Shown one piece after another: positions 14,833 to 59,297 of a stretch of 64,000 nt of DNA; the first letter of the stretch is position 1, and each line of letters begins with the position of its first letter. Origin of the DNA: Lytechinus pictus (Eukaryota); contig NC_087252.1 in the NCBI RefSeq assembly GCF_037042905.1, positions 14,136,001-14,200,000 of the forward strand, in the 5' to 3' direction. The notes below the pieces were generated by a model, which was not told where the DNA came from, did not search any database, and worked only from the letters and a program-made list of their open reading frames with translations. The translations under genes were made by a program, and so were the position numbers.

Positions 14833-15189
14833 AGGTTCCAAATCAGTAATCTGAGAATCCATAATATAATTATAAAAATTTCCTGCCGATTTTGTGATTA
14901 TTTTGGTGGAAAAACTGTTAATCATGTGAGATTGTTTGCACCATTGACAATCTGCTCCGATCCTACATGTAGCTAGTAAAAAGTATGTATGTATAAACCT
15001 GCCATGCACGTTCAGGCAGGAGGCCAGTTCGTTTGCAATGTATTGGGTTAGCAAGAAAATCACCGCAGAACTTGCAAAAGTTTACAGTTATCGATTTTGT
15101 TGTCTCTGCTTCGTCATCTGTTGGTTATTTGATGAAAATTCATCACTTTGAAATGTATTAGACCTAACTACATTTTGTTCAATATTCTG

Positions 15190-15294
15190 AAATACGGGAC
15201 AAATAGGCGTCCCGGGGAGGGTTTGTCGGGACGCGGGGACAAAGGAGCAAAATACGGGACGATCCCGGGAAATACGGAATGTCTGGTCACCCTG
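15190..15294. mobile_element. hAT-like transposon end (CAGGGTGACCAGA on - strand)
   Basis: CGGGAC subterminal repeats ending in TCTGGTCACCCTG. Confidence 0.5.
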
Positions 15295-15472
15295 TCTCTA
15301 GATAGATCTACTAGCAGTACATGTTAGTCTACTGAATCTAAAAAATGTAGCCTAATGTTTATAGTCCGAAATTAAAGTTCACCAGTTTTTCTTTTGACTT
15401 TTGTCCACCATGCACCAATCATTAATGTTGTCATTTGGCTTTAATCTAATGTTTAATTGTGGAGATGCTTAA

Positions 15473-16090
15473 AGGAAAATGAAACCCTCGGAACAAGTGG
15501 GCTTGTGTGGAAAAAGAAAAATCAAAGAATAAGATCAAAGAAAGTTTGAGCGAAATCGGACAAATAATGAGAAAATTATGAGCATTTAAATATTGCGATC
15601 ACTAATGCTATGGAGATCCTCCCATTGGCAATGCGACAAAAATGTGTGATGTCACAGGTGAACAACTTTCCCTTTGATGGACTATAAAATACCCCCAAAT
15701 GTTTCTTTTTGCTCTTTCTTATGGTGATACAAACTCTTTATCCATAATATATTCTTTGAAAATCTGTATTACAAGCCCTCCTATACTACATGTACATATG
15801 TAGAAATAATTCATGATCTACTGATTAATGTAATGAAAAAGGCATTTTAAGTGAAATATATACAAAACTAACAAAAGCAATGGGAAAGTTGTTCACATGT
15901 GACATTACACATCTTAGTCTAAGATAGTCGCATTGCCAATGGGAGGATCTATATTACAATAATGATCTAAATTTCAAATGCTCTTAATTTTCTTATTATT
16001 CATTCAATTTTTCTCAAACTTTCGTTGATCTGTTTCTTTGATTTTTCTGTTTTCACACAAGCCATCTTGTTCCAAAGGTTTCATTTTCCT
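15473..16090. mobile_element. Kolobok-like MITE, family A
   Basis: TTAA TSD, AGG...CCT termini, long TIRs; relatives at 55321 and 62500. Confidence 0.8.
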
Positions 16091-17067
16091 TTAAATAAAT
16101 TATTTGATCAAAGTATCTCCTCTGTAAAAAAAGTGCATATTGTTCTGTTGCTCATACATGAAATTTCCATTGCCCCCGGCCCGAGGACGCTTATGCTTGC
16201 GTGTTTGTTAGCCCCCGAGGACTGTTTTCGGGCTGCCACAGTAAGCATGCTTGATACAATGGCTGTCATGTCACAGGCATATTTTCTTTGAAATGAGTCA
16301 TCCTGTCGAATGAGATCTTTAAAAGCTTGTCTTTAGTTTTGGTATTTAAATCTTCCCTATGGAAGTGAATGTCACTGAATTCCATCTCATGTCATAATTA
16401 CTCTAGATAGAGACTCTATCAATCATAATCAATGAATATGTGCCCGAAACGTTTGTTGCACAAAGGATATTACATGTACATGTATAGTCTAGACCTTTCT
16501 AGTCTATCACTAAAAATTTGTTTTTGGATTAGTTTACCAATTTAACATCAGATTTTAAATTAAATTGATCATCCAATATGGCTTGTACATCATGTATACA
16601 TGTACGATTCTCAACTTTAAAAATAAAGAAATATGGGTACTGGGTAGGGCACTGTACGTAAAGATATGAAATCTGAATTTACAATTTTACAAAGGATTTT
16701 TGTCCTTGGTTGTTTCCTTCTGTGGGTGCTTACATGTGTAACAGTGATTCTGAAACCTAAAACCTAAAACGTAATTATACCCATTCCATACATTATGTAC
16801 ATGTAGGTCTGCCTAGCGGTGAGCTGTCAGTATATTTTTTGCTGTATCATGTTGGAAACCCTCCGTATTCTAATAACTGATGATGGATGCTATTTTATTC
16901 CCTCTCCTTCTCTGCCACTTGAGAAGCTGTACTTTGGTTTCACTTTCAACAGACAATATCCGATTTTAGAATGAAAAATGTCTGCGGACAGTATCTGCAT
17001 ACATGAACATTGATCCTCAATTTACATGATGTACAGTACTGAACAGGCCCCATCTTACAAAGAGTGA

Positions 17068-17276: not shown

Positions 17277-17371
17277 CGATCAATCGCAACTATGGACGGC
17301 CAGCAATGTCAACATATAAAATGCATACGAGTTTGCAAAAAAAAAATCTAGATATGAATGTATACATATCC

Positions 17372-19246
17372 CAAGGCTCCACATTAACTTTTTTTGGTGG
17401 TGGCCCGTTCGGGCCACCAAAACCATCAAATAATTTTTTTTTGGTGGCCCGATATTAAAGTTTGGTGGCCCGAAAAATATAAAGAAAAACATTAAAAATG
17501 AATAAAACAAACTTCTGAAATATTAATTCTGCAGCCACTACCACTAAGTTCCTTTCACTTTATACATCTTGTATGTAAACCTTGTTTGCTGTTATTTTAC
17601 TTTGCTAATTGATAATTGTTTCTATCGTTGTAAAAATGAAATGATTGAAAGTGAATAAATGAATTGTATTGTTCGCAGGTTGTGTGGACTTTTTTTTAAA
17701 TCTCTGTATAGAGATAATGGTAAAGTAAATAAATAGTGCATAGCAAACTCAGATAGATGTACAAAACAATGGTTTTTCCTTCCTTCCTCTTTGAATCCTA
17801 AAACCTAGATTATGCATGCCCCAAATCCAGTTTATTTCTGTTTTCTCTTTTGCAGCATATAGAAGGAGAAAATCACAGAAAAATATGCTGCAAAATCAGA
17901 ACAATGCATAAAAGGGAGAAACAAACGAAAATAAATTTCAAAAAGTATATAACAAAAAGAAAACAAAAATAATAAAAGGAATNNNNNNNNNNNNNNNNNN
18001 NNNNNNNNNNNNNNNNNNNNNNNNNNNNNNNNNNNNNNNNNNNNNNNNNNNNNNNNNNNNNNNNNNNNNNNNNNNNNNNNNNNNNNNNNNNNNNNNNNNN
18101 NNNNNNNNNNNNNNGTTAATATAAACATGGGGAAAAGGGGAAAATTAAGAAGCCATTACATATATTTTTAACAGTTGTGGCAACAGTCTATTCTGACTGG
18201 AATATAATTAAAAGCCAAGCATATAATTTTCACTTACATTTTGGGAATGGCACATTTCTATTTTTATATCCTTTAGTTTGTATTATTTTATTTTCAGTAG
18301 AAACATATTTTTTAATCAGGCATATTCAATGGGAAGGGGTATAAATGGTTTAACCACTGTCAAAAAAAATAAAAGAAAAAAAAAGAAAACGGCAAAAACT
18401 ATATTGGAAAAAAAGTGTGAGAAAAGTCCTTCCCTATATTTGCCAAAATGTTGGGAAAAAAATCACATTTCATATCAATGAAATGCCTTCCCAAAGTATT
18501 TACTTTCTTAAGAGTGGTTTAAGAAGTCATTTATAAACAAGAAAGAAAGAAACTGTCTGTTTGTTTAAGGCTAGAAAATACACAGCTTCGAAAGAAACCA
18601 AGTATCAACATAAATACAAATGCACACGTGGGACTGTGATGTACTTGCCTATGTGTTTTTATGTGTATTAATTCATGTGGAAATCGGTCTTTTTGAGTCA
18701 AAAGAGAGGTCATAATTCCTCTTCTTAATACTTGCAAATAATCAGGGTACACCAGATTTTCGTAATATAGACTGTAGAATTTCATTTCATTGGTGTAAAA
18801 GGTGACTTTGACTTAGATTTTCAAAGTTCTGTGGAAGATTTCTCAGCAGCAACATTTTTTATCGCAGCTCCCTGAGTCTGAATAGGCTGAGCTAGAGTTA
18901 GAGCACAGCTGTATGCAGTGGCTTCATGCAAAGCTCACGCCAGCCGGCCGGCGCGGCTGGCTGGATAATAGCTACCGTATGCTATAGCTGTAGGCCTAAT
19001 ATGCAAACTGTGTGTGTGTGTATTTGTGTGTAGATCAACAAAAAAGGCGCATGACGAACTGGCTTGCAATTTGAGCTGTAGAAAGTTGATAAATGCGTGC
19101 AAAATTGGGAGAAAAATTGCGCTACTTTGAAAATTATTGGTTGCCCGATTCGGGCCACCAAAACTTAACATTTTATCAATAATGGTTGCCCGAGGTGAAT
19201 TTTTGGTGGCCCCGGGCCACCGGGCCACCGCTAATGTCGAGCCTTG
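17372..19246. mobile_element. Non-autonomous DNA transposon with CAAGGCTC(C/G)ACATTA TIRs (spans the gap)
   Basis: TIRs plus GGTGGCCC/GGGCCACC subterminal repeats at both ends; no clean TSD. Confidence 0.65.
17983..18114. other. Assembly gap (132 N)
   Basis: Run of N. Confidence 1.
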
Positions 19247-19687
19247 ACTTGCATATCCAGATTAAAATTCATTGATTTCTTGACAATTTGGTGTGTTCTT
19301 CTTTGTTTACAAAGGACATTTTTTAAATTTCCTGTAGAAAAAATTATGACACTGATGGATTTCCATAGAGTTAAGCTTGATTGGATCAATCGTAACTCTT
19401 TGTAAGACGGGGTTCAGGAGTGTGTGTGTGTGAGTTTGAACAGGCTTGTATGAGGGTATCAATCTGTAATATGATTGTTTACATCTGAGACTGACATTCA
19501 ACAACATTACCATCTGATAGAAGTGACCTGGGACCCGTCTTCATACTAAGAGTTACACGTATGATTGATCCAATCAATTAAAACTCTATGGAAATCCATC
19601 AGTGTCATAATGTTTTTCTACAGGAAATTTTTTATGTTCTTTGTAAACAAAGGAGAACACACCAAATTGCCAAGTAATCAATGAATA

Positions 19688-20298
19688 CACTACCAGTCAC
19701 AATTCTTTGACTCACTATTACCTGTTTCGGCCAGAGAACAATAGAATCAGTGGACCAAATCTATTGTTCTCTGGTTGAAACAGGTAATAGTAGGTGGTTT
19801 CAAACCGCCTCGATCACAAGAATCCCCGTTAAATTACGAGAACTTTTTTAGGCTGAAAAATACCCATTAATTATTCCTGCATTCACACCGCCCTGAAACA
19901 TACCCTTCGGGATAAGTTCCTGAAGTTACGAGCATGCGCAGTATGGTCTGATAAGCAGCAAGGCGCGAAATTCAAAATCACTAGCCCAGCAGCAACCCAT
20001 GCACGGCGCCGCACCCAACGACACGCTGGGCTAAAAGTTCCCGTAATTTGCTTTCAGACCGCCAAAATACCCACGACCTTGGAAAAATCCCCGTGAAAGT
20101 TCTCGTAATTTCGCCAAGTACCTACTATTTATCGGGTATTTTCTTTCGGGGATATTACGCGTAGTTTGCTTTCAGACCGCCAAAATACCTGGTATTTTCT
20201 GATCGGGGTAAATTTCCCGATCAGAGAATACCTGGAACTGGCGAACTTCGAGGCGGTCTGAAACCACCTAGTGATTCAAAGAATGGTGACTGGTACTG
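19688..20298. mobile_element. TA-flanked Tc1/mariner-like foldback MITE
   Basis: TA CA(C/G)TACCAGTCAC ... GTGACTGGTACTG TA. Confidence 0.75.
19792..20269. mobile_element. Harbinger-like MITE with 3-bp AGT TSD
   Basis: AGGTGGTTTTCAAACCGCCTCGA / TCGAGGCGGTCTGAAACCACCT; the host palindrome is restored on removal; older copy at ~48465-48938. Confidence 0.8.
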
Positions 20299-20676
20299 TA
20301 CATGTGATTCTATGCAGAGAAATTTTTGAGCAAACATGCATTTCATATGTTGACTTTGGTGGCTTTCCATACATGTACATGTAGTTGTGATTTGTCAGAT
20401 CAATCACAACTCTTTGTAAGACGGGCCCCAGAGCTCAAACAGTCCGGAACCTCTGCATCGTAACTCCCCCAAAGTACTGTTCATTGTATCTCGGATAATA
20501 GGCGCACGCAACAACATCCAGTTGTGCATTGTGGCAACAAATGAATCAAACTATACATGTAGATCCAGGCTGGTATTAGTATGTAGACTCTACATGTATT
20601 CAACCTGTACACTGTGGTCTGTACATGTACATGTACGTGCATGCTTTTTGTATGAGGATCAACACATAATTATTAA

Positions 20677-21270
20677 AGGGGAATCCAGCCTTGGCCATAA
20701 AATGTTGTGTTAGGAAAGAGGAAAATAAATTAACAAAATGGTGAAAGTTTGAAAGAAATCGGACAAGCAATAAGAAAGTTATAGCTGCTTTAAAATTGAG
20801 ATCACTAATACTATGTAGATTTCAAATTGGCAACTGGGTAAGTAAATTATGACAAGGGGCAAGGACAACTTTCCCATAGGCCATGTACTTTATTATCAGG
20901 GATTTGTGGTTTTCTCCTAAGTACCCATTCCCCTGGGGCGGTAATCTAAATATAACCCAGGTAGTATATTGTTTTATGTCCTCATGAAAGAAAAATATAA
21001 TTTGAAATAAAACTTTTGGGAAAAATGACATTTTAGCCATAATATGTATTGGAGTACATGGAAGAGTAGTCCTTGCCTTACATCACTATGACATCCCATA
21101 TGCGGCCAATTTGAAGTCTCCATGGGTATAGTGATTACCAATATTTACAACTTTTAAAAATTCATAACTTTCTTGTTGTTTGTCCAATATTGTTCAAACT
21201 TTCACCTATCAACTTGTTTGATTTTTCTTTTCCTTATAAAAACAAGTTTTTATTTGGGTTGGATTCCCCT
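20677..21270. mobile_element. Kolobok-like MITE, family B
   Basis: TTAA TSD; AGGGGAATCCA...TGGATTCCCCT; near-identical inverted copy at 32365-32965. Confidence 0.85.
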
Positions 21271-22359
21271 TTAAAAATATGAAACTTTGGATTTTGGAAC
21301 TACCGGTACATGTAGGTGGTAGTAAGTGTTCTGTACAACTTTACATTGTACATTCTGGATGTACAGTACATGTACCACAATGAGAGCATTGTTGCAGTCT
21401 TACATTTTACAATTGTGGACTTGAATCTAGATATTCCTCTCGAGTACATGTGCTTTAATACAGGCTACAGGTGTGTGTGCAGTACATGTACATGTAGGTG
21501 TGGAGACTTTGATTTTTAAACCTCATGTGATCGTGCAAGGAAATAAGGGTGCTGTGTAGATTTGGGAACACACCCATGAATTTGATCATGGACCTACATG
21601 TACTGTATGTACTACTCTGTCAGAGTAGTAGGTCCATGTATACACATGTAGGCCTCTTGCATTTTAGATGTACATTATATACCCATAACCCATTAGGAAT
21701 TTTTGTCTTCCCTTTTTGCCGAGATCCCAAATGATGACTTCTGAAAGAAAGATGGGTTAAAAGAATCAATTTGGGAATTGTAGATGTAAGAGAATTGTTC
21801 TGTAGAAACTTCTTTTCCTGAATATATGTTCACTGTTCTTTAGTTTTATTCTCCCTCTTTTTTTGGGAGGGGTCGGGGGGGGGGAGGGGGTGAGGGCTCC
21901 CACTCAAATCACTTCAGTAATACCAAGATGGAGTGAATGTCTTATTAGATTTCTACATGTATTGTCCAATAACTTGTAGGCTTTATTGTACGTGCATGGT
22001 TTCTGTCTTTCTGAACACTGGTAACTAATGACTCATGAAGCCTAACCCCAGGGGTCTCCAATCTATGACCTGACCTTTGCAAGATTTTGATTTCCACCAT
22101 AGGATGTGACCAGTCGAGGGTCATGGTAATTGGAACGTGTAGTGTGTTATACTGTACAGGACTACAGGATATGAAGTATAGTTTTGAAAGTCAACATTAA
22201 TTATAACATTGCATTGTAGTTTATAGCGACAATATGGTATGCAGACTACAGTGTAATTAAAGAGGGAGTGAATATCAATATTGAGTTTGGTCTCTCCTTA
22301 TAATGTACATTGTAAAGTGTACATAGTTTTAATACCCTTTGACATAAAATAGCCTTGTA

Positions 22360-22876
22360 TAATTTTATATCCTATATAAATTAAATCATGTATGCTGATT
22401 GGTTTAAATACATCATGTGACCAAACATATTCTCACTATTTTGTGATGATGTTGAAAATGAAACGCCCACTGAAGAAAAATTGCTATTCCGTGACGTCAA
22501 TGATGGAATAGTGCACTATTCCATCATTGGCGTCACAGATCATGACGGCGCAAGCACTAATACGCGTTCTGCGCTGTGAGCGCGTGGCTTCAGGAAAAGT
22601 ACCGGTAGGTCAGTTTAATAGCGCAGTGGGTTATCTTGGCTCAGATTAAAAAAGGATGAACTACGAGTACAAAAATTAGATTTTTAAGATATATTGCTCT
22701 AATTTATTCAAGTCGGATATAAAACAAATATATTCCAGGCCTTTATTTCGAAAGTATAGAGGGAATTACCGTTCTCATCCTTGGTTGTACACTGTACTGG
22801 CAAAATAGTAATGCCAGTCCAACCTCGGATGAATAATTCCTGCTATACTTACTCAAAGCCTGGTATATTCATCTAT
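22360..22876. mobile_element. Crypton-like non-autonomous element
   Basis: TTTTATATCC...GGATATAAAACAAAT, CTGATTGG, 46-bp palindrome at 22491-22536, terminal long hairpin ~22730-22870. Confidence 0.45.
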
Positions 22877-22935
22877 TGTAAAGAGGAAAAATTATTTTTA
22901 AAATGTTTTGAGAGGAAAAGTACTGTTTTGCTACA

Positions 22936-24019
22936 CAGTCAGACTGCAGGTCCCAAGAAAGTGGCTTCTTTCATCCAAGTGATATTCATGACTTGGGATG
23001 TTTTGCATATTTAATGAGCTTGATGCGGACCAAAACACCTCTTTTCATTCGGTCATTGCTGCTCTAATTGAGCATCGAATTTCATGAATTTGGTACCATT
23101 GTAAAGAAGAAGAATCATTCTTTCAGGTCATGTGTTTGGATTTATTCAAAGATTTTGTAATAAAGGTTAAAATTTTGATCTAAAATATGCTACAAAATAA
23201 ATATTTTTACCTGACAAAAGCTGCTATTTTCACACTTTATTTTTATTTGAGCCCAAATGATTTTTATATCATGATAAAGCTGAATATGTATGCTTTAAAA
23301 TGATATAGGTTTCAAAATAAGAATTGGTTTAATCGGGTCAAGATCACACTTTTCATTTGCCAAGTACATAAAGCAGTTTGAAAACAAGAATACTGCACTC
23401 TGATTGGTCAAAGAGACCACACAATGGAAAATTCCAACGGTCCCAGTGCCTGTGTTCGTGGGAAGGTAACACTTCCCATGTGCTAATCTCCTCAAATACC
23501 CCGCGCCTGTTGTTCTGTGAACCTTATCCAGCCAATCAGAACTCTGGATTTCATGCAAGTACAAAATTTCAGAAATCTCGTCTTGTACCCTGGTGGGAAA
23601 AGTGTGATCTTGACCCGATTAAAAGGTGCCGCATATCAAGAGTGGCATTGTGAGAAAGTACAGAAGTTCAGCTTTATGGAGATATAGATATCATTGAGGC
23701 TCAAAATAAAAAGTTTTGCACAATTTGCAAAATAAAACAGAGGAAGAAAATTCAGTTTTGAGGCACATTTTCAGGCCAGAAATTTACTTATTTAACAAAA
23801 TATTGTATACAAATTAAATGACCAATATAAAAGAGTAACTTTTACTCTATCTGATGGTGCAATAATATTTCATTTAACTTGAGGTTAAGACATGTAAATT
23901 CTTAGAGAAAGAAAATCTCACGAATCACGAGATTTTGCAAGGAGGAGGATTCAGCCACGAGATGATTTGGATGAATCTGGCCTTTTTGCTCATTAGCATA
24001 GGGACCTGCGGTCTGACTG
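22936..24019. mobile_element. Non-autonomous DNA transposon with CAGTCAGAC(C/T)GCAGGTCCC TIRs
   Basis: 19-bp TIRs; CAGT terminus typical of Tc1/mariner; TA on the right flank. Confidence 0.7.
23328..23623. mobile_element. Internal or nested inverted-repeat element
   Basis: TTTAATCGGGTCAAGATCACACTTTTC / GAAAAGTGTGATCTTGACCCGATTAAA. Confidence 0.7.
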
Positions 24020-25493
24020 TACATGAAGTATGTACAGTACTTTTTGGGGTATGGATGTATTGAGCAGTGAGTAGTGATTGTGTGGAGCCTACTACATGTA
24101 CACACTGTTTTTAGTGTTTCATTATCATGGGCAAGGAACGTGGTCAGTGTCAGTAGTTATAGTCGTGAGGTGACATGCTACAAGGCTGCTCGTTATCTTT
24201 CTTTTTTTTCTTTTTTTTGGTGCTTTTTATGAACAGTGCCTCACGATATCACCCTTTTTTCATTAATAAAAATGATGTAGGCTTTATGCCTCGACGTAGT
24301 CCATATACCGTAGTCATTCCATTCCGCTCTTTATTCAACTGCTTCAGATCCCATTTTCCCCAAACTGTTCCCCACATTAGGTCCCGAAGCCCAAGGACGA
24401 AGGGTCAGCTAAACACTCTTCAATTTCTGTTGGTTTTGGATCAAGTTTAACCGCTATGTTCAAAGTTGTGCCAAGTTTCTGAATAGGAATTCAGAGTAGG
24501 CACTTCGAGCTGGCAACCCCATTGCCATTGTGTTGTCGGTTAATGTCTTAAAGGGAGTTTCAATTTTCATTTGAATAAACAGCAAGGATAGGAGGGACAT
24601 TGTAAAATGAGAAGAGTTCTATTCTAGATTGGAGGGACGATAATGTAGAAAGGTGGTTTATTGTGTCATGGAATTAATAGCAAAAAATATAGGTTTCTTG
24701 CTCAGGGGTCAAAGAAAGAATGGCAGATGAAGATTCTTAAGAATGAAAACTGGAAAAGATGTTTGTTCTTTTTGTTTTGTTTAAAATGCAAGGAGGTCAT
24801 TATTCACATACCTCGCACAAAGTACAGAATCAAGGGTCCCTACATGTTTGTAGGCTTATAATTATACTACATACATGTACGTATCAAGATTTGTCATTTG
24901 TGATACTACTGTAGTATGATAATCAAAGAGTGAGGGGCATAAACAAGTGTTTCTGGGCACTACTTTGTCCAATAATCCTATCTTTCTAGTCAAAAGAAGG
25001 TTGCCATATTAAAATTAAAGATTCTTTTGAACTGTTTTGTACATGTGCTGTACATAGTTCAAACGCAAAATATTACTGAGAAGCATGACATGTATACAAT
25101 GTGCACTTCCCTGATCCAAACCAATGCTCCGCATTGCATTCCGACACTTTCTTGGTTCTCCCCACCCTTCGTTGCATGTTACGATGCACTGTATTGAAGT
25201 TGGCCTATAAAAGTAAATATTACCTGTCCATGCATAACAAAAATTGTTTGCTAAATGTCTGCACTCTATTGTTGTAAGGTCAAATTTTCTGCTTTATCAC
25301 AGGTGCGAAACACCCTCAGTGAACTTAATGTGTTTATATTCGATTATTCAACGAATTATTCTGTTATTAGGTATTTACATGACGTGTGGAATAGCAGTAA
25401 GATCAATAGACCCATTCTCACCAGCCCATTTTGGCTCGGTATTGAGATTTTACTAGGCTTGTGCCTATGTACAGGGGCACTGTGGTCTTCAGC

Positions 25494-25678
25494 TAGTCTG
25501 CAGGCACAGACCCTGATTGAAACTTTGATCAACAAGTGGGTCTCCATGCAAAGACTAGCACGTATAAAACCTGCTGTTTCAATTCGAGGGCCTTCAGTAC
25601 AGGTACACAAGGCATTATACATGTACAGGCTGCTTATTCAGACCCTTAACCCGAGTGAAGGGTTTGCACAGCAGACTA
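25494..25678 (+). mobile_element. TAGTCTG...CAGACTA mini-element with 9-bp TSD
   Basis: TSD GTCTT(C/A)AGC; copies at 38458-38620 and 61958-62126. Confidence 0.8.
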
Positions 25679-25747
25679 GTCTTAAGCAGTGTGTACATGT
25701 AGGCCGCGCATTCAGACTGCTTGTATCAACTTGGGTTTGCACACAAA

Positions 25748-26068
25748 GGCCCGTATTCTGAAGTCAGGTTTAATTTAAACTCTGGTTTTTAATACTGTAA
25801 GTTGTGGTTTAACTATGGAAAGCCCATTATTACATAAATCTCTCACAGTAGAGGTTCAATGTATCAGCTCATTTGACTCCAAAAACATTATTAACTGCCT
25901 GGGAAGGATAAGTATGACAATTGTCTTCACCATTGAATAATTAGTGAAGAGCACAGTTAACATGAGAAGCATTCACTGTAAACAAAATGTTGAAACGTTT
26001 GGCTTCCCATAATTTTAGCACAGAGTTAGACCATGGTCTAAGTTAAACCCGACTTCAGAATACGGGCC
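25748..26068. mobile_element. Harbinger-like MITE
   Basis: TIR GGCCCGTATTCTGAAGTC; second copy 34084-34407. Confidence 0.8.
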
Positions 26069-28126
26069 AAAGTGTATAGACATACAAGTATGTAGGGTCT
26101 GTATTATCAGACTATTGTTTAGTTGAGGGGGGAGGAGACTGAGAGTGAGCGAATGAGTCATGAGTACAGTCATCACCCAAATGGCCATCTCATCCATATC
26201 ACGTTTTAATACACATACAGTACTTCCACATAAAATTTGTTGAGAAGCAACAGCCCATATTTCACCCAAATCTAGTACATCAATACAATATCTTGCAAAA
26301 AATGCCTTCAATAAATGTCTGTAATTTATTCTTTCCTACTTTTACATCCACTGTGTATAAATTACAATTTAATGGCCCTGTAGGCTGTAGTGTAGGCTTG
26401 CCAAGGATCTTTTTAATTTGGATATTGTGTGCATGCAGTAAATGCATTTCCACTTTTAGAATATGATGAATAACAATGTTCAGTGTAAATTTCACACCAA
26501 TTGATACATGGATCAACATAATACACAAATTTCCTATTAATTATGTTTATTGTACAGTACATACTTCACAGTGTGTAAGAGGATTTGTTTTAAAATTCCA
26601 ATAATGGTAATATTTGAAATAATACCAAAGAAAAGTGTTTTGTCCTTCCAATCCTTTGTGAAATGAAGGTTTTGCCATGATAGGGCCTAAACATGCGTGT
26701 ACATGTATGTCCACAGCATACAGTACATTCCATATATCCAATCATGCTGAAAAAACGTTTTCAAATTCAATATGAATTCTATCAAGTATCAAGTGATACC
26801 CAATTCAATTCATGATCAAAGAATTGTGACTGGTAGTGTACATGTACATACCTGGAAGTGCTGCCAATGTTTTATTTACTGAGAAACACACCTTTGAGTA
26901 TCATTGTAGACACGTATTTCATAAAATTAATCATCTCATACATGTACATGTACATACTGTACCGAATTGCAGTCCCTGCAAGATGAATCCATCTGCTTGT
27001 TTAATAATAAGGAAAGGTTTTAGCCAGCCATTAGTCAGCCATTTTGGGGAAAAAGGGCCTCTTCTGCCTCGTGCCCACTCAGACAGGACGCTTAACATAT
27101 TCTTAAATATATTTCGCCTATTATAACCCTCCTCTATTTTTGGCTCTGTATGATTCACACCCCTATACATGTAGGTAGCGACAACTAAAACAAAAGGAAA
27201 GAAAGGTTGATTAATAAAGTAGGAGAGACAAGGGTTATCTCTTGAAAAGCTTCATAAATTACCTCTCTTGTACACTCTAGACTGCTTTTACACCTTCCCA
27301 GTTCTGAAAAATGCTTGGTATTCAAGTAGGTCATTCCACTAGTGTGTGGAATTTGCAGCGGAGCAATTGTCGGCTGAGAAAATGTTGTGGAACCTTCAAT
27401 TCATTCCACTTATGAATATACTTTTAACGATGTTTATGACAGTTTCATGAATGCATTTTTTAAAAACAACTTTCCATTTAAATAATTTGCATTCCTTGAA
27501 AGAAATTTACAGCAAATTTGTTTATAGTGGGGATGTTTTTCTTCAAAACTTTGAAAGCATGAACAAGCATTTTTTCCCCAAGTTTGATGGGATTTTATAG
27601 CTGTGTTAAAACTTATTATATGTATGAGACAATGATGTGAGGCTAGGGAAAATGTGCATCCTTGTCTTCAGGAGGCTAATAAACTCAAAGAAGATGATGT
27701 AAAATAGCTATTTTGTATTTAATCATGATTCTGAATATTGTACGTAAAACTGGATTGATAAAATACGGTTCAGAATTCATGTTTTCAAATTTGTGGATAT
27801 TTGCTTTCCAGGCAATAGCCTAGAGGTAAAGACCATAATTGAGCCAGTGCGATATAATGAAATAATAATCATAATAATATAAAGTCACTGAATCAAAGAA
27901 TATGTGATTACATGTCCCATTTCACATTGCTCCGTCATGCGAATGTGATGTGACCGCCTTTCAAGCGCAGAGATTTCAATAATCATTATAAAGAGATAAA
28001 ATAGTGGGTTCTACTTCATACCGGTTGCTTGCATATACACAGTGTACATTTGTAGATGTTGCTTCATGAATTGGAGCGTTGAATGACTTCACTTTTGATA
28101 TAGCCAATAACTTATGAAAACATGCA

Positions 28127-31432: not shown

Positions 31433-31598
31433 CACTGTAAAAAATGAAGTGTAATTTAGCACTTACAGTGCTTGTATGACTGCTAGTCTATCGAGTGCTG
31501 ATTGTTTAGTTTAAATTTGAACTAGAAAATCAGCACTCATAGTGCAGTCACTATACTAGCACTGTAAGTGCTAAATTAGCACTTCATTTTTTAGAGTG
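31433..31598. mobile_element. TA-flanked CACT...AGTG foldback MITE
   Basis: Near-complete palindrome with TA TSD. Confidence 0.75.
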
Positions 31599-32364
31599 TA
31601 AAGTCATGAAATTTTAATATTGGGACAGCTGCTCATTCTGTTATAATATACAGGTATCATGTAGATCTAGACTACAGGTATGGCTTCACAAAATCAAACC
31701 TTGAATTAAAATTGGAGAAAATGGTTTTCAGTCATGATTGATCAAACCATAAATTAGGTTTCCTTCAAATTCAAATCGCACCGCCTTGAGTCGGTGACTA
31801 CCGATTTTAATTGTGATAATTGGTTGCTGAAAACTGTCTTTATATGGCAAGCTTGCCATTATTGTACACTGTCGTTTTTCACTGTGTGACAATGGAACCT
31901 GACTATTATTGTTTCTTTTCGAGGGGGAAGGGTCGAAACCAGGGATCGAAAGAGGGAAAAGGGAAAATGCATACGATTTTTATAATCATATACGATAAAT
32001 TCTTAATTGGTCTAAAACCAATCTAGTTGGTCAGTACAGTCTCGACCCATTACATGATGTACCTAGGCCTAATAGCATTTTGTCTACCAAACAATGTATG
32101 AAACGGTGTCCCTGGATTGAAGCTCAGAATATTTCTGCTCCATCGTCATTACCACCACTACCATTACCTCTCGTTTATATTTTTTATCATGAATCATAAA
32201 GTTATGAAATAATATTGTATTGTATTCTGCATATCAATCATATTCTCTGCTTTATAATAATATTCCAACTAGCTTTGCTCAAAAACAGAACATAGAAAAT
32301 TGGTCACAAAATCCAAATCTCCTTTTAACGTTAGAAATAAAAGAACACACAAAACAGGCGTTAA

Positions 32365-38620: not shown

Positions 38621-38800
38621 GTCATCATCATAGCTGCTATACTTTCCCTTGTGATCATCACCATCATCATCATCATGTCATCATCATCATCATCATCATC
38701 ATCATCAGTCATCATCATTGTCATCAACATCATCATCATCATCATGTCATCATCACCCTCATCATCATCATCATTACATGTACATGTATCATCATATCCT
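38621..38800. repeat. (ATC)n microsatellite
   Basis: Seen directly. Confidence 0.9.
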
Positions 38801-45564: not shown

Positions 45565-46072
45565 GTAAGTTTCTGAAGCTTTTGTTTGTAATGTAAGCCT
45601 ATACACTGTACAGATAAACTGGAGGTTGTTTTGAAATACTATTTAGTACAGATCGATGTACTGTATTTGCCCATTAATAATCCAATTATTGATATTAATC
45701 GCTGCCCTTTAAAAGTGACTATGTTAAAAATAGTTTTATTCCCACTGTTTTTGCAGGTACATGTAGTGTGCATGTGTAGGAACATAATGAAGGAGTCCAA
45801 ACGGGAAGGAAGAAGTACATGTAGATAGAAATTTTCAGAATGAAATTGGACAAGTAATAATGTTCAGAAATTTCCTCTACTTAAATGTAAATTGGATGCA
45901 AAATGGTAATTCCAAGTTCTACAATTTTGGAAGAATAACCCTGGCAATTAAATATTCATGGTATGCGAATGAGAGCTCTGATGAAAATGGCTCTGTATAT
46001 GTTAAAAAAGGGTACCTCACTTCCACTTTATGCTGATAACTTTATAGGATAGGCCTACATGTAGTTTTTTTT

Positions 46073-47472: not shown

Positions 47473-47553
47473 TATGTTGTAGATCTAAAGAGATATTCCA
47501 TTGTTCCACCCTGACTGCGATTTCAATGCACGCGATCAAGCAGAACATCACAT

Positions 47554-47700
47554 GGCCAAGTGCATGGTCTAAGGCGCCTGACTCTACATGGAAAGTCCGG
47601 GGTTGGATCCCTGGTCGCGGCACCTACATGTATGTCCGTGAGCAAGGCATTCAATCGACAATGCTCTTTTATCCTGCATTCAAATAAATGGAAATGCTAT
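47554..47700 (+). mobile_element. Degenerate tRNA-derived SINE
   Basis: TGGCC..GGTCTAAGGCG, B-box-like GGTTGGATCCC, GAGCAAGGCA core. Confidence 0.55.
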
Positions 47701-48464
47701 ACGCATTATTGGTAACTATGTGCTCTTGTTTTACGTGCAAAGTCAATGCAGTGCAGATACGACAGTTTAATTGACTGACCGCGCATTTGCATATATTCAG
47801 TGCATGCAGTTGTTGTTTGCTTTGCTATTATACACGTTACTAAAAATTTTGAAAATCCCCACATATCAACAGAAACTGAATTAAATTGCTGCCTAGAAAT
47901 TTAATGAAGTATTATGCAGAATAGGATTTGTGTTTTCATTTTCTATAAAAACCTCAAATCATTTCTTTAAAGCCAAAATTCACTGATGCGATAGTTCAGA
48001 TGAATGCCTACGATATGCTCAACTGTACTCCTCAATAAACTTAAATATTAATTTCCGCCTCCCCTCCAAAAAAATCTGATAAAGTGGTATTAAATGCATT
48101 TAAATATTGATGATTTTGTTTGAAGTATAGGAACATATTCTATATACTGTCTAGACTCTGATGGTCACACCTTAAAGTTCAGGTTCAAGTTCAATGTAAA
48201 TTCCATGTGAGTGTTATTCCTATCCTGATGTCCCATAAGGTATAGTCTCCTCATGCAAACACAACTGGTGGTCAATCAGAGTCCCATGACACAAAGATTA
48301 GCAATTAACCGTACGCTTGATTTTCACCATTAATTGTACATTGCAGTCAATGCAAAAGATTGTAAAAAAAAAATGTTCTACAGTGATCATAAAGCTTTGT
48401 GTTACAGGCCCCAGGAGAAATATAGCAGTGGGATGGCAAGTTAGCTTGCAAACTGGTCGTTCAA

Positions 48465-49339: not shown

Positions 49340-49740
49340 GGGCCCGTTGCAGAAAGAGTTGCAATCAATCGCAACTCTAAAAATCATGCGTAACTTGATT
49401 TTCTACAAATCAACAGCGCGCAATTGAGACTTGCGATTTATTTTTGGACTTGCGTTTAAACACATTGCAACTCTTTCTGCAATGGACCCCTGGGCCCCAT
49501 CTTACAAAGAGTTACGATTGATTTGATCAATCTATGGAAATCCATCCTTGTCATAATTTTTTCTACAGAAAACTTGCAAAATGTCCTTTATAAACAAATG
49601 AGAACACACCAAATTGTCAAGAAATCAATGAATTTATGGATATACAGTACATTTATATCTAGAATTGTATATGTTGACTTTGCTGGCTTTCCATAGTTGC
49701 GAATGATCGGATCAATTGCGACTCTTTGTAAGACGGGCCC
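49340..49740. mobile_element. Two tandem CWG-targeting MITEs nested in a third MITE
   Basis: CAG[GGGCCCGTTGCAGAAAGAG..]CTG[GGCCCCATCTTACAAAGAG..]CTG. Confidence 0.75.
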
Positions 49741-52700
49741 CTGATCTGACAACTTGGCTTGATTTTGATTGGTTGTCAGACTGCTATGATGGTACGTGTA
49801 GCTATTGGATAAAGCAGACTACAACGTGCGAGTTATACTTTCAGTCACGTAGCTAAGCTTTGGAAAGAAACTATTCAACTTTGTAACATCCTGGATGATG
49901 GTGATGTCTCCAGTCAGAATTGATTTAAATTTATCCTGTACCTTTGAGCCTGTAGACACAGCAAAGATGTTTGTTTGCTTGCAAATTGAAGAAATTGATT
50001 ATTTTGCCTTATAATTACCGGTACCTTTTAAATTGTTATTTGTTATACAGATAATTTTCTTATGAGACAGATCTTTCTATACCCTTGTGCATGCCTTCGT
50101 GACTGGAATAATAAACTACTAAATAATCATCGCCAATCGAGAGAGCTGGTAAACTCATGATAGTGACGATCTCCTGAACCCAGCCCTCCCAAACCCCGAA
50201 AGGGTGGACGCATGCCGGGAATGGCTTGGTCTGTACCCTCCACCGCAAGGGATCCCCCCTGATCGGCGATATTCGCATTAAATGATATCCTGGTGGTTTT
50301 GAATACATGTGATTGCCTTTCCTACCCCTCGACAAGCCTCGTTTTGAAGTGTCACAGTGAGCCCACCTCGTAGCATGTATTTGTGGATATTAGAGATTAT
50401 TCAATTTGTAGAACTAGCCATGTTTGTGCATTGTTGACTGTTTAAAGTACCAGGAAACGTGGATTGTGTCACTTCGGTAGTGTCCGTTGCTTAATGCTGA
50501 ATGTATTCACAGACACCATGCCATCCATAGGAAGAGATACTGTTTTTAGAATGGTCGACTTTGGTTTGGACTAAGCATTAATTAATCAATGACAGTGATT
50601 TGTTTTCAAGTGGGTTATAATGTACAACTACAAAGTCTTGATTGATATTGTCTGTACATGTACCATTCAAAAGTTCGTACTTTCAAAAGCAAATATATAA
50701 AGAAGACTTTTAAACCGTGGTTTCACTACATGTACATACAAAATTGCTTGGATTCCTCTTGAACCTTTATTAAATTTCAAATTGACATTGACTTGTGCAC
50801 AATTGTCTTTGATTATTTGATAAAGGAATTCAGCAGAAGTGGTTTTGTTTTAAAAAAGAAAGCAAACAACAAGACATAAAAAATAGTTTTTCTGATGCTT
50901 TGTGTCGCCATGGACTTGTCACTTTAATTTTGATATTTCAAAAATTGATTTGTTTCTTTTACTATAAATTTGCATAATGGAATTTGATTATAGTGGATAA
51001 ATGCAACATTGAAAAAAAATAAAGAAAAAAAATCAATAATGGATTTCAGTCTTTAAAATCTTCTTCATATAAATTTACAAATAGTGCCTCTTATCAAGTT
51101 CTGAAAGTGATTTCTAAAGAAAAGGACCTTCTTTCTTGAGCCAAGCAGCCTTCATTCATCTACAAACATGTTTGTATTTTGATGCCGTTTCCTAGGACTA
51201 AGTTTCAAGCCGAGGAAATTTTTGTGGCAGGGATATCCGGCAGGCGATGGATAAATCAAGTTAATATAAGTTTGACATCACTCTTGAACTCCCTTGTACA
51301 TGAAGACATATCCTGAATAGTTTTTTTTTCAGATTTGTAGATCTCTTTCTTGGTCAGCGAAAGTGTAGGAGACTCGAGAGAAACCTTAGATGGGTTTGAA
51401 AGGCTTCGTTTCATCAGGACTGGTTTGAGTCAATGAAGCCTTGATAAGTTTAGAATGGTTTCCCTAAACTCTCGATCACGTCGGGAATCTAGTCTTTGGA
51501 TGTCACCGAGCACCGTCATTGTCGCTCATGCTTTTTCTCAGAGAGTTGATATGTCCAGTGCACATGATCTTTGGTTATTTCAGCCCTGCCATTTTTACAA
51601 TGGCTGCAGTATGATTTTGCTTCAATGTACATGAGAGCCCGACTGTTGCCGTGAAGATTTGCATTGTCAAGGTTTGACTTTAAAAAACGCAGCTCTCCTA
51701 CTTTATTCCCAACTTCAGGACTCGCCTGCATGCAGTATTTAGGTTTTGTTGCACACCCAGAGGAGTGTTAGAGAACGGTACATTTGTAGTTATTCTTAAA
51801 TTTGAGGATGCACTTAATTACACTGTTTTCAATGAAACATGGGATTCTGATGCTTTCGACATCAGTGGCTTTTATCGTGGTCAGCTGATAGGCTTTAGAA
51901 CTACCACTGGTTAATTAAGTATCCTGTACAATATATTTGCTGCGCGTTCAAGGACCATCTTCCATGAGCATATCATCAGATCAACTGCTTCGACCTGTGG
52001 ATATCCTTCATTGGCAGTGAATAAAACATGCTTGCAAATGCTCAGGTCATTATAGTAATTAGCCAAAGGATTAAGATATTAATCACCAGGTGTTGACATA
52101 ATGTGCTTTGTACACATAACAAAGGATGCTTGTTCAGAGATGACAGCAATTAACATTGAAACTGTTATTGATGAGGTAGTATATCGCGCAAATATTGACA
52201 TGGTAATTGATGACTTAGTTTTGGTATTGATTACCAATAGGCTATTGAGAGCACTCGCATGGAAGCTACAAGGAAGAATGTAGGTTTTCCATGTAGCCTA
52301 GTAATTCAGGAATCATTGTGTTTCAAACTATGCATCAACCAGTCAAAGCAATGTTGTCTGGAACTGGGATAAACGTGGATATATGTCAATTCCTCAACAA
52401 CGAACTTGGCCACAGAGTTCTTAAAATGTCAAGCAGATGTTTACTTCATACATTGCTACGAAGCAAGTAAGAGACTCTGTTATTGACACTACCATGAACT
52501 ATTCAGCAAGGACGCTTGAGTGGACAGGAGAATAAATATTGTCGGGTATGAAAGCAGTACAGTCTTGGTGTAGATAATTTGGAATGATTTTGGAAAGCCT
52601 TTTTCTCCTTGAATTATTTGTGTTCCAAAGGAAAGTGTTATTGTTGTCTGAGTCTTCTTTTTTCCTTGATTTCTTTTCACTTTATTTAGCAGGACCATTC

Positions 52701-54695: not shown

Positions 54696-54779
54696 AGATG
54701 GACTTAGCACTCAGCCGATCCAGCGCATAAGTCGAGCTGCGTCTGACGCTGGCTTCAGTCCACTTTTGATGTATGTGTA

Positions 54780-55018
54780 CACTGTAAAAAATGTGGTGTT
54801 AAAACTGACACCAGTGGCAGTTAATAGAGGACCACACCCTCTGGTGTTAAAATTACACCCTAGAGATTGAATATAACACCAAAGAGTGTACATGTAACAA
54901 CCAAAGGTGTTGTAATAACACCTTTAGGTGCTAAACTAACACTGTCAATTTAACACCGGTGTAAAATAACTGGTGTGGTCCTCTATTTACACCGGTTAAC
55001 ACCGCAGTTTTTGCTGTG
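54780..55018. mobile_element. TA-flanked CAC...GTG MITE
   Basis: Termini, TA TSD, AACACC/GGTGTT repeats. Confidence 0.65.
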
Positions 55019-55320
55019 TACATGTTTCACCACCCTAAGAAGAAGAAATCCAACTTCCATGTCTTTTTCTGAGAAAAAATATAAAATCAGTGACAACAGA
55101 AATAGTTTACATCTTAATATAAGCATGAACATGGTAATGAGATGATGTTTCTAGAACCAGGCATTACTGAACATACTGGTTTGAAAATATTATGCAAAAA
55201 TTAAGTTGGTTCATTAGCATGCTTTATAGCTTATTGAACACAATGAACGGAATAAAGAGCATTAAAAAAATCTTAGTATTTCTTCATCTATGTCTCATAA
55301 TCTGATTTTTTTTTATTTAA

Positions 55321-56102
55321 AGGAGAATGAAACCCTTGAAACCAGCTGAATCCATATCAAAGAGAAAAATCAAAGAAACATATTGTTGAAAGTTTGAGGA
55401 AGATTGAATGAATAATAAGAAAGTTATGAGCATTTGAAAATTGAGATCACTAATGCCATGTAGATCCTCCCATTGGCAATGCAACCAAGATCTGTGATGT
55501 CACACACGTACAACTCCCTCATTACTTTAGTACTTATTTCACTTATATTCTCACTTTTATAGAGTCTATCACAAGGTGAGGTGTTCTCTTTATGAGAGGA
55601 CAAGTACAGAGGTTTCACAACATTATATCAATGATGAATCGTTTGTCATATGATTAGAATGAGCAAAACGAGATGTTTTGGGGTACATTTTCAGTGTCCA
55701 AAAGGGGAGAGTTGTCCAGTTTTGGACACTGAAAATATACCCCAAAACATCTCTTTTTGCTCATTCTAATCATATGACAAACGATTCATCAATGATATAA
55801 TGTTGTGAAACCTCTGTACTTGTCCCCTCATAAAGAGAACACCTCACCTTGTGATAGACTCTATAAAAGTGAGAATATAAGTGAAATAAGTACTAAAGTA
55901 ATGAGGGAGTTGTACGTGTGTGACATCACAGATCTTGGTCGCATTGCCAATGGGAGGATCTACATGGCATTAGTGATCTCAATATTCAAATGCTCATAAC
56001 TTTCTTATTATTCATTCAATCTTCCTCAAACTTTCAACAATATGTTTCTTTGATTTTTCTCTTTTATATGGATTCAGCTGGTTTCAAGGGTTTCATTCTC
56101 CT
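55321..56102. mobile_element. Kolobok-like MITE forming a near-perfect 782-bp palindrome
   Basis: TTAA TSD; 383-bp arms with a 16-nt loop (55704-55719). Confidence 0.9.
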
Positions 56103-56469
56103 TTAAGAACATTCTGCCTCGAACATAATTGAGTTGGATCAAAACTCCCTGTTTGGAAGTAATGTTGACAGACCCAATGCATAAATCCGTTCTTCAAAGG
56201 CATACACTCTTGTGCAGTGAAAGTGGACCACCTGCTAATTAGCACCATGGATAGTTCTAGTAGGATCCATGTTTGCACCAAAGACCATGTTCTGTGAAGC
56301 AATGCCATATAAAAACGAAATTCAGGGATCTTTGGAATGCTTGTATTAGTCATGCTTTCAAGTAATAAATATCATTTTCAAAGTAACTTTAATATTTGTC
56401 ACAACCTCTAGTGCATTACTTTTACAATATTGCTTATAAATGCATGTGTATGCCCTGCTCGTTCTGTTT

Positions 56470-56775
56470 ACAATCAAACCTGTATTAGTGGCCGCCTGTC
56501 TGTAGTGGTCATCTGCCTATAGTGACCACTAATACTGATTCCCATGAAGGAAGATTGTGTGTATAAGAACCTGCCTATAGTGACCACTAAAACCAATTCC
56601 CATGGAGGCAGATTGTGTGTATAAGAACCTGTCTATAGCAGGCACCTGCCTATAGTGACCACTAAAACCGATTCCCATGGAGGCAGATTGTGTGTTTAAT
56701 AACCTGTCTATAGCAGCCGCCTGTCTATAAAGGCCACATTTTGTGTTTCCCTTTGGTGGTCACTATAGACAATTG
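56470..56775. mobile_element. Degenerate pogo/Tigger-like MITE with internal tandem repeats
   Basis: TACAATCAAACCTGT start; repeated CCTG(C/T)CTATAGTGACCAC units. Confidence 0.55.
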
Positions 56776-59297
56776 GGTGTTATTTTTTAATTGAATTGAA
56801 TTGAATTTATTACCAAATTTCACTGTCTGGTACAATTACATGGAAAAGTACATCACATATATGAACAAAACATTTGGTAATTGGAGCTAACATATCTAGC
56901 AAGATGCTATTTTTTCTCTGTATGTATTGTTTTTCTTAATTTGTAACAATTTTATTGTTAAATGCATGTAAAGTGATGAAATACTACTTACAGATGTACA
57001 TGTATGTAATACAACTACAAAATGTCAATCCTGTTGGAAATGGAAACAAAATTAATATAAAAAAAGATAAAGGAAAAGAAATTAATAGCATTGAAGGAAA
57101 TGGCCCCTGACTCTTGACATGCTGTGCCAATGGTTGCAGCAGAACGAGTTGTTAACAATATCCTCAGTCGTAAAGCTTTAATAGATCCAATCTAAATAAT
57201 CGCTTCACAAATTCGTGCCAGGAACGAATTAAGGAATTGGGACTTGATGGCAAATATCTCCTGTATTTCATTACAGCATCGCTAATCTGTAGGAGACAGA
57301 TAGCGGGCGCGGAGTTTGCCCCCATTGGCAGTGAATCTCCCCCTCCCTAACCCCCATCCTGGCTTTATGTCTGTCAGTGATTGCACTCCCACGTGTCATA
57401 TGAGCTTCCTAGCAAAGTCATAGAAAACCTAGAAGAAATACCGAAAAATAGAGAGTTGGATTAAATATTTGATACGCCTCTTAAGTCAGATCAGGGATAC
57501 AAAGAAGGCAGTTGGGAGATAGTGAAGATTTGTTCAGCTCTTCGGGGGAATTATGGGTAGTTGTTCCTGGAGAAATTGCCTGTTTTGTGTGGGAGACTCA
57601 CTAATCCTTTACGCCTTGTAGGCATGGAATGTGCATCTTTTGAGATCGGGGTACGAAGCAGCAGTCTTCGCTCATTTGCCTTGGTGAAGGCATCTTATTG
57701 TTCACTATAGGTATCGCGTTAGCTGAGCTGAGATTTTTTGTGAAATGCTGTCGCCATTTCTTGGAGTGATCAGTGATTTTCTATGTTTTGAATTTCAAAG
57801 CTCTATCTGGAATATTTCTTCTTGTCTAACATCCTGATCTGCATTTGTATTATTTGTTGCCCTCAGTTTGTCTCTATAGATTGCACATTTTAATATTTGA
57901 ACATCTTCAATATTAGTTTTTCTTCTTTCTATTATTCAGGGATACAAATGCTGATATTGACCCAACCAAGGATTGACAAAATTACAAAACAAAACTCCCA
58001 AAAGATGTGAAGTGTTTTTTAAAAACAAAATACTCTGCTTTCAATTCATTGCTGTTATTTTGTTATGTCTTGTGCAAACGTTTTCCTTCTTAGCCTGGCA
58101 TTATTAGCAAAAGTTAACCCTTAGAATTGCCTAAGAGGTGTCAGTAACATATTTTCAAACATATGCAAAGTTCTGTATTACCATGATTACTGAAGAACAA
58201 TGAGATTATGATGGACAGAGACAATTATTTCATATTTCTTAGTCTTCACTCTCTTTTTGCATAACACATTTTCTGGGAACCCCTTTTCTTGCATGCGAGC
58301 CAAGGAAAGTCATAGCTTTCATGTTGCTTTCTACTGGATACTGATCAATCAAGGTGAATATCACACTATTTATGGACTTCTTGGATTTCCAGCCAAGTGT
58401 TGAGAGGCTAAGAATGGACGACAGACTTTCAATGCCAAATGAATTCTTATTCAATCAAGATATTGCGTTGAGGAGTTTACAAGATTGGTTTCCCCTGGAA
58501 ATTAATACATGGAGTTACTTTTGACTTTATTCAAGGAGAGCTTCAAGAGAATGCTTTGGTCAAGGTATTTTATGATACCTCAATTTCATTGCTGATTCCA
58601 GTTCTTCAACCAGTATCATGATTTTGAGAACTTATTTATTGTCTAATTATTATTGAAACACAAGATCTGTTTATAGTCCATGATTACACCAAGCAAGGTT
58701 TGACTCCGCTAGACAGTCCAACACCAAAGAACATTGTTGCTGATGTTGTTCCAATATTGAACATTAATTGGGGAGTCAATGAATTGATTGTGTCTTGTGA
58801 ATTTGCAATTAAAGACAATGATGTTCACCTGAAAAAAATATGCACTTATAAGAACAGTCTGCTATAACATGATGAGCAGACATTGAAATGTTCAAATATT
58901 GACCTGGGCATCTTTAAGCGAATCATTGCCAGGGACAGGGTCTGTTAATGTCCTGGACCATTATCAAGACTAATTTGTTTTTGTTCTAAAGTAGATCCTA
59001 GACCAAACGTTCTGGATAGCATGAATAGTATCCTATTTCATCTTCACTGATGTGTACATTTACCAATCAATGATATCAGTTTGTGGATCATTAACTTCAA
59101 TAACTTGAGCTTGAATTGGGCTAAAGCGTGAATGTTACTGTGAAAAAAAATTCCATGGAAGAACTCTTTTCTGCTGCCCAAGATCAGAAGCATCCCACAT
59201 GGTACAGTATAGGACTCTACTTTAAGTCTTATGTTCAATTGGTGACCTAATGACTGTATCAGTGTTCCTTGTCTATTGATGCTGATCTTTGATAAAC

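Follow-up and report, generated by a model that had tools for sequence, protein, structure and literature searches.

The window analyzed here was a 64-kb stretch of the Lytechinus pictus genome (64,000 nucleotides; contig NC_087252.1 of assembly GCF_037042905.1, positions 14,136,001 to 14,200,000 of the forward strand; positions below are those of the window, and features are given without strand, unless stated), and it contained a 42-kb field of short TA-bounded insertions at 14964–57004 (called scars below, after the reading argued for here) that was marked by the eight-letter palindrome TACATGTA, i.e., TA-CATG-TA. TACATGTA was present in 60 copies in the window versus 1.72 expected from dinucleotide-preserving shuffles (maximum in any shuffle, 6), in line with the 55–65 copies versus about 2 expected given in a preliminary description of this DNA, and it was the most over-represented octamer after homopolymers. 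The field harbored 57 of the 60 copies (1.2 expected there), arranged as 49 loci: 41 single units and eight doublets TACATGTACATGTA (16% doublets). Only three copies lay to the left of the field (1273, 6032, and 6069) and none past 57004, and the clustering of loci in 14964–57004 had p ~1e-6. An assembly gap (N) at 17983–18114, with A-rich flanks and more than 1 kb from the nearest TACATGTA site, was located within the field between the sites at 16798 and 20370; it was left unfilled and unused, the counts cover read letters only, and no claim needs continuity across it. No gene was identified in the window by open reading frame (ORF) lists, a composition score, a crude splice-aware exon finder, or two Pfam scans, and no Rfam family was found there; strand skews in the window were noisy.

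The 30-letter flanks on both sides of the TACATGTA sites were mutually unrelated, and thus the octamer was not carried by one repeat family. The genome-wide k-mer count proposed as a check in the preliminary description gave 224,046 copies of TACATGTA in 812 Mb (17.7 per 64 kb), about eight times the ~27,000 (2.13 per 64 kb) estimated from base composition. The field stood out from this background as well: its locus density of 1.17 per kb was 4.4 times the genome mean, and the octamer density was 1.6 per kb at 16–48 kb of the window versus 0.26 per kb in twelve random 10-kb loci.

Paralog and word-class comparisons were applied to 264 kb, composed of the window plus 20 further loci (L001–L020), and every octamer locus therein was considered. 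Eleven paralog comparisons were informative, and 10 of them displayed an insertion at a TA, as had been claimed from examples within the window: (i) clean insertions of 6 or 12 letters (+6 or +12) in six cases (L004:708, L012:6510, L018:8774, and window 20370, 41193, and 38775), with four concordant paralogs at L012:6510; and (ii) complex or compound longer insertions of the same pieces in four cases (window 15787, 25618, and 1273, and L004:2798). The remaining case, L018:8997, was of substitution type, with a single difference from paralogs reading TATATGTA. Within the window, the doublet scar TA-CATG-TA-CATG-TA at 20370–20383 faced a plain TA (at 49691) in its sister repeat copy 49669–49747, leaving a clean 12-letter gap in the alignment; the single scar at 41193–41200 was a clean +6 relative to a TA in the paralogous copy in L014; and the doublet scar at 38775–38788 broke up a run of (ATC)n where a C-to-T change had created a TA, ATCATTATC being what is left once the 12 letters are taken out. 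The compound scar TACATGTACATATGTA at 15787–15802 was 14–17 letters longer than the same place in two other copies of its family, which resembled MITEs (inverted-repeat transposable elements of miniature size). TA-CACTG-TA (TACACTGTA, +7) at 22788–22796, on the forward strand, occupied only one arm of a diverged hairpin, the opposite arm having two letters there. A copy of a short interspersed nuclear element (SINE) of transfer RNA (tRNA)-like type, with a box-B-like GGTTGGATCCC, was recognized at 47555–47720, and the octamer at 47625 did lie within it, as described, and may be an insertion there; SINE anchor patterns matched, genome-wide, the window's own copy alone, which marks this copy as diverged. 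An all-against-all indel tabulation in the 264 kb returned just 21 six-letter events, two of them ACATGT, which were too few to use, and MITE anchors containing CpGs matched 15 copies with zero insertions, an uninformative sample size.

The octamer was one member of a class. When the 136 TA-N4-TA word classes in the 264 kb were ranked by enrichment over a second-order expectation, palindromes took four of the five highest places, namely GGCC (17x), CATG (11x), CCGG (11x), and GATC (6x), and the fifth was a (TAC)n microsatellite word. The GGCC word TAGGCCTA was found 66,473 times genome-wide versus 3,425 for its reversed control, and all its eight copies in the window lay in the field (18991, 30664, 32064, 36164, 37868, 41318, 46050, and 48799; 0.52 expected in the window); TACCGGTA and TAGATCTA were likewise enriched, and the chains TAGATCTAGATCT and TAGATCTAGGCCT occurred in the 264-kb sample. 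Shorter and longer relatives of the octamer shared this distribution: (i) all 10 window copies of TACACTGTA/TACAGTGTA were in the field, versus 0.45 expected for the window and 0.4 for the field; (ii) TACAGTA/TACTGTA was present 33 times in the window versus 7.3 expected, and 27 times in the field versus 5.0; and (iii) TACATA/TATGTA was present 61 times in the field versus 31.8 expected (~1.9x). The excess counts in the field were thus ~56 for +6, ~22 for +5, and ~29 for +4. A TA-bounded palindrome is the expectation if a few letters of each inverted element end stay behind, and in the octamer the extra letters were indeed the terminal letters of both inverted ends, CATG being CA plus TG of CACTG/CAGTG-ended elements; ends reading CAG... 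and ...CTG agree with the whole series of CA/TG, CAG/CTG, CATG, and CACTG/CAGTG. A (TACG)n-like array at L018:1092–1450, containing TACGTACGTA 17 times, inflated some TA..TA word counts outside the field.

The octamers are read here, at a probability of roughly 0.75, as fossil footprints left by the excision of Tc1/mariner-type cut-and-paste transposons that target TA. The insertion at TA, the palindrome class, mixed chains of different scars, TA-flanked CA..TG elements, and Tc1-type transposase matches (the last three detailed below) all agree with the insertion–excision cycles put forward in the preliminary description. Such a footprint is of a kind already known: Tc1/mariner excision leaves 3′ overhangs of two or three letters, which are end-joined into TA-flanked footprints (PMC7827188; bioRxiv 10.1101/659086), the commonest being TACATA/TATGTA (+4) for Tc3 and TACAGTA/TACTGTA (+5) for Sleeping Beauty (bioRxiv 10.1101/659086). 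An element would enter a TA and duplicate it; on leaving, its transposase would cut the non-transferred strand two letters inside each end, so that the flanks would retain, next to TA, two letters of the element each, CA at one side and TG at the opposite one; and end-joining that retained both overhangs would then give TA-CA-TG-TA, a net gain of six letters. With inverted element ends, the retained letters would always be palindromic. The same process acting on other element families would give TAGGCCTA, TACCGGTA, and TAGATCTA, three retained letters would give TACAGTA/TACTGTA and TACACTGTA/TACAGTGTA, and chains would arise when a later element entered the TA of an earlier scar and then left. 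We infer excision as the origin of the scars, the two-letter stagger, and the repair route from these word patterns.

The field contained 12 multi-unit chains with shared TAs, eight of them CATG-CATG and four mixed (CAG-CATG, CATG-CTG, CAG-GGCC, and GGCC-CATG): (i) TA-CAG-TA-CATG-TA at 21362–21374; (ii) TA-CATG-TA-CTG-TA at 21595–21607, followed by TGTA; (iii) TA-CATTG-TA-CAG-TA-GGCC-TA at 30652–30671; and (iv) TA-GGCC-TA-CATG-TA at 46050–46063, in which two scar types had a TA in common. The mixed chain TAGGCCTACATGTA was found 2,421 times genome-wide, equally in both orientations (1,204 plus 1,217), versus seven times for its control, and slippage cannot make such chains. By 8-, 14-, and 20-letter counts, the genome harbored 205,789 single, 8,455 double, and 449 loci with at least three units (96% single). 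Relative to the genome mean, loci in the field were raised 4.4x and doublets 17x, which was near the square (n = 8 doublets); a near-square rise indicates two independent hits, whereas slippage predicts a linear one. CATG followed CATG at 4.2%, followed GGCC at 1.8%, and occurred at a generic TA at ~0.4%, and hence re-hitting accounts for most doublets, with a 2.3-fold homotypic excess remaining.

Two octamers flanked a 1.6-kb segment at 24093–25701 that was mostly single-copy except for a high-copy repeat at 25490–25689. The outermost seven letters of this segment were inverted copies (CACACTG ... CAGTGTG; rough chance odds 0.02), and it may be an element that occupies a doublet scar's central TA, or else the likeness may be due to chance.

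The scars displayed a target preference on both sides of the TA. Of the 49 loci, four had a T directly 5′ of the TA (background 0.30, p = 2e-4) and two had an A directly 3′ of it (background 0.29, p = 1e-5); scars were absent from all 329 TTAA sites, versus ~4% of GTAC, GTAG, CTAC, and CTAG sites with one. A symmetric preference is expected of a two-fold symmetric enzyme complex on a TA. In the 21290–27280 region, partitioned by read depth, single-copy DNA had 3.1 loci per kb versus 0.8 in high-copy repeats.

Several observations bore on age. One-off octamer variants numbered 62 in the field versus 27 expected, and this excess of 35 against 57 intact copies implies a mean substitution of ~7% since insertion, which is an upper bound since imprecise scars were counted too. 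A 603-bp TTAA-flanked MITE at 20673–21275, with ~110-bp inverted ends starting AGGGGAATCC and at least 40 copies elsewhere that were 96–98% identical over ~600 bp, lay in the densest scar cluster and contained zero scars versus 3.9 expected (p = 0.02), and this young scar-free element is a time marker. Older relatives of this MITE were recognized at 15469–16094, 32361–32969, 55317–56107, and 62496–63092. The site at 21954 was carried, with a C-to-T change, by a contig of another individual from a separate study, and thus the insertions were real rather than an assembly artefact, and at least some of them were old. Contig ends from other resequenced individuals, at 26945 and 27167 (X2) and 26951 (X6), fell exactly at unit boundaries (~0.24 expected, p = 0.002); such coincidences would be produced by a de Bruijn graph bubble of the presence/absence type, a hint at polymorphism and not a demonstration of it. 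In four read runs on 21290–27280 (likeness 85), the repeats at 22290–24089 and 25490–26089 dominated, and the indel rows were repeat-borne only.

Candidate source elements for the CA..TG scars were present in the window. All four TA-flanked CA..TG elements listed in the preliminary description were recovered: (i) a 239-bp MITE with CACTGCAAAAA.. inverted ends at 8246–8488, outside the field; (ii) a 611-bp element with CACTACCAGTCAC.. inverted ends at 19686–20300; (iii) a 166-bp MITE with CACTGTAAAAAATG.. inverted ends at 31431–31600; and (iv) a 239-bp MITE with CACTGTAAAAAATG.. ends at 54778–55020. Termini of this kind numbered in the thousands genome-wide, the TA-flanked CACTG terminus TACACTGYAAAAA being found 8,301 times versus 288 for its control, with facing pairs ~160 or ~235 bp apart that made up at least 4,000 MITEs. 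A 1.7-kb TA-flanked element at L014:2073–3790 (G000:C1:27002073–27003790) had CAGTGCGTCTC.. (CAGTG) ends and ~220-bp perfect inverted repeats and contained no ORF above 69 residues; its termini were found 104 times genome-wide, with ~20 in pairs 1.7 kb apart, which suggests a non-autonomous Tc1-like element with recent mobility.

The genome also encoded a DDE transposase of the superfamily. A profile search with DDE_3 (PF13358, Tc1-type) gave 729 candidates at first look, among which at least 150 were near-identical ~72-bit matches with no internal stops, the majority lying in open frames of 364 residues and many forming facing pairs 1.3–1.7 kb apart (e.g., G000:C9:712162–714088 and G000:C4:487726–489835). 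The proposed search for an active TA-targeting transposase with CA..TG ends thus yielded the Tc1-type matches, and the termini of that family were not seen. The idea that the L014 element represents the end of the 364-residue family was rejected, its 104 termini not lying near the transposase matches. A MITE with GGCCCGTATTCTGAAG.. (GGCCCG..) ends was rejected as the source of TAGGCCTA, its target duplications being three letters long and not TA. This MITE family (~320 bp) was represented at 25748–26068 and 34084–34407 in the window and at L013:3035–3350 and L017:1268–1578, and read depth suggested about ten thousand copies.

Some findings weigh against excision by Tc1/mariner-type elements. 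The preferred context, with G or C beside the TA, is unlike the AT-rich palindromic target consensus of Sleeping Beauty and Tc1. At no single locus were all three states (element-occupied, empty, and scar) observed, so that excision itself went unseen. Source elements were found for the CA..TG scars only, no TA-flanked element with GG..CC, GA..TC, or CC..GG ends being found in the 264 kb, and the ends of the 364-residue Tc1 family were not seen, the L014 element not being one of them. CATG after CATG was 2.3 times as frequent as CATG after GGCC, and slippage, or else co-activity in time and place, may underlie some of the homodoublets. The scar spectrum departed from those of the known systems, with +6 dominating here versus +4 for Tc3 and +5 for Sleeping Beauty, and TACATGTA was absent from the eight Sleeping Beauty footprints listed in bioRxiv 10.1101/659086; this dominance of both-overhang scars is a genuine difference, and it suggests that the germline of this animal has its own stagger or mode of repair, or that another, related process is at work. 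Moreover, Sleeping Beauty integration is reportedly near random genome-wide (PMC7827188), and near-random integration does not predict sharply bounded scar fields.

Several of these points would favor a TA-directed insertion without the excision of a resident element, whether by aborted integration plus disintegration with end letters left behind, by the cut of a transposase-derived or other nuclease at TA with capture of a short oligonucleotide, or by religation of four-letter sticky ends in elements with four-letter palindromic termini: +6 is not the major product for Tc3 or Sleeping Beauty (bioRxiv 10.1101/659086), neither a GG..CC-ended element (264 kb) nor an occupied allele was seen, and fields are unexpected under near-random Tc1/mariner integration (PMC7827188). 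Such an origin is nonetheless unlikely, since the inserted letters were constant and independent of the flanks, the commonest of them matched the two outermost letters at either end of abundant TA-flanked elements, and the graded +4, +5, +6, and +7 forms were all consistent with CAG/CTG ends; in addition, the enriched N4 words were palindromic only, whereas a four-letter stagger on non-palindromic ends would enrich non-palindromic pairs too. The spread of a (CATGTA)n hexanucleotide microsatellite by replication slippage might seem to be suggested by the 16% of doublets in the field, the roughly geometric series of unit numbers genome-wide, and the homotypic excess, but it is very improbable as the origin of the octamers: it can generate neither the first unit at unrelated TA sites nor the 2,421 TAGGCCTACATGTA chains, doublets scaled with the square of local density, arrays were phased TA to TA (449 versus 113 in another phase), and other TA-flanked palindromes behaved in the same way. 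The homogeneous arrays grown from an existing array that define a microsatellite were not what was found.

A selected protein-binding palindrome, i.e., a regulatory site, would account for the perfect symmetry of TACATGTA and for its clustering in one region beside a CpG-rich patch. It would not account for insertions at random TAs, some of them inside repeats, for the 35 excess one-off variants against 57 intact copies, for the chaining and co-occurrence with the unrelated palindromes GGCC, GATC, and CCGG, or for 224,046 genome copies; the octamer was neither maintained nor held in a specific context as a transcription-factor site would be. A regulatory origin is therefore highly unlikely, and the unrelated flanks, abundant one-off decay variants, and chaining with other TA-flanked palindromes bear out the earlier statement that TACATGTA is not a protein-binding motif, although later exaptation of some copies may have occurred. 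An origin by substitution, as in double CpG decay of TACGCGTA, is exemplified by the L018:8997 site, which differs from its paralogs (TATATGTA) by a substitution, yet 10 of the 11 comparisons were length changes; within the field, TACGCGTA was found once and the intermediates TACGTGTA and TACACGTA two times and once, respectively, against 57 copies of TACATGTA, and 57 of 84 ACATGT cores had the T and A flanks. Because the intermediate words were almost absent, CpG decay, which the preliminary description had named as the outcome that would overturn its view, can be discarded, and substitution in general is scarcely credible as the main source. An assembly, polishing, or library artefact, for which no supporting point was found, is given next to no weight, in view of the point change at 21954 in another individual's contig, the decayed variants, the restriction of sites to the TA context, and their absence from the young MITE.

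Excision footprints by Tc1/mariner-type elements, the favored origin, could be compared with four known systems. Minos, a Tc1-family element, resembles the present case in leaving TA plus four element letters (net +6); the difference is that its four letters derive from one end via a mismatched four-letter overhang pair and give two non-palindromic variants, while only palindromic N4 words were enriched here. Tc1/Tc3 of Caenorhabditis elegans are alike in the duplicated TA, the CA..TG ends, the cut two letters inside, and the end-joined TA-flanked scars (bioRxiv 10.1101/659086), but the commonest Tc3 scars keep one overhang (+4) and come from single experimental loci, while here both overhangs were kept (+6) in most cases, and the fixed copies number ~200,000. 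Sleeping Beauty leaves a TA-flanked CAG/CTG remnant by non-homologous end joining (PMC7827188), and its TACAGTA/TACTGTA were enriched here too; in contrast, it has a three-letter stagger with overhang pairing and a +5 product that was a minor class here, and near-random integration versus the fields of this genome. Mariner-like elements and Stowaway MITEs of grasses insert at TA as well, and comparative genomics has identified their excisions as a mutational process that is concentrated around genes (PMC5023962; PMC1925063), but these amount to 158 curated excisions between two rice species (PMC5023962) with no dominant scar word reported, versus more than 250,000 recognizable scars of at least two types here. 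No report of TACATGTA enrichment in echinoderms was found in the open-licence literature, and the scale of more than 250,000 scars, the +6 palindrome dominance, the several palindromic types, the hit-like chain statistics, and the fields were not found in the part of it that could be searched.

Excision footprints are normally seen singly in experiments, and here they were seemingly kept by the hundred thousand, in several types and with independent-hit-like counts. If this is true, the scars would be a countable record of past cut-and-paste activity, including that of lost elements, datable by word decay and mappable along chromosomes. Scars of this kind supply small insertions to this genome in large and countable numbers. 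The mutational process behind them would add between 4 and 14 letters at TA, affecting a few per cent of the favored TA sites in some regions, and would bear on indel models, on alignment, and on the very high polymorphism that sea urchins show.

Scar density fell rightwards over ~40 kb from a sharp left edge of the field and had a weak negative correlation with CpG observed/expected (rho = -0.33, p = 0.016, 52 bins). Because several scar types, presumably from different element families, were enriched together in the same 42 kb, we weakly infer that the field most likely reflected a property of the region, in target accessibility or the choice of repair (e.g., chromatin, or one unit's transcription in the germline), and not the local hopping of a single donor element. 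It is a tentative, and rather doubtful, extension of this view that scar fields are a heritable fossil map of germline sites where TA-transposons could land and leave. If so, the abrupt left boundary next to a CpG-rich patch, the fall over ~40 kb, and the shared enrichment of several unrelated scar types would imply that entire transcription units or chromatin domains became accessible to transposons, or were directed into the kind of end-joining that forms scars. For each gene, the density of octamers would then be a readout of chromatin or transcription in the ancient germline, and rounds of insertion and excision would rank among the major origins, specific to certain regions, of the small insertions and new palindromic sites that echinoderm genes acquire. 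The field structure also makes it testable whether Tc1/mariner elements integrate randomly in a natural germline.

Just left of the sharp field edge, a CpG-rich patch was recognized at 12001–14000 (observed/expected 1.11), possibly a promoter. The window additionally contained 11 poly-G/poly-C tracts of 10–15 letters (35 overlapping 10-mer matches versus 0.02 expected), at 2567, 4386, 10016, 10673, 10719, 12398, 13023, 21875, 33111, 40072, and 42663, and five of these 11 were located at 10–13 kb, beside the CpG-rich patch.

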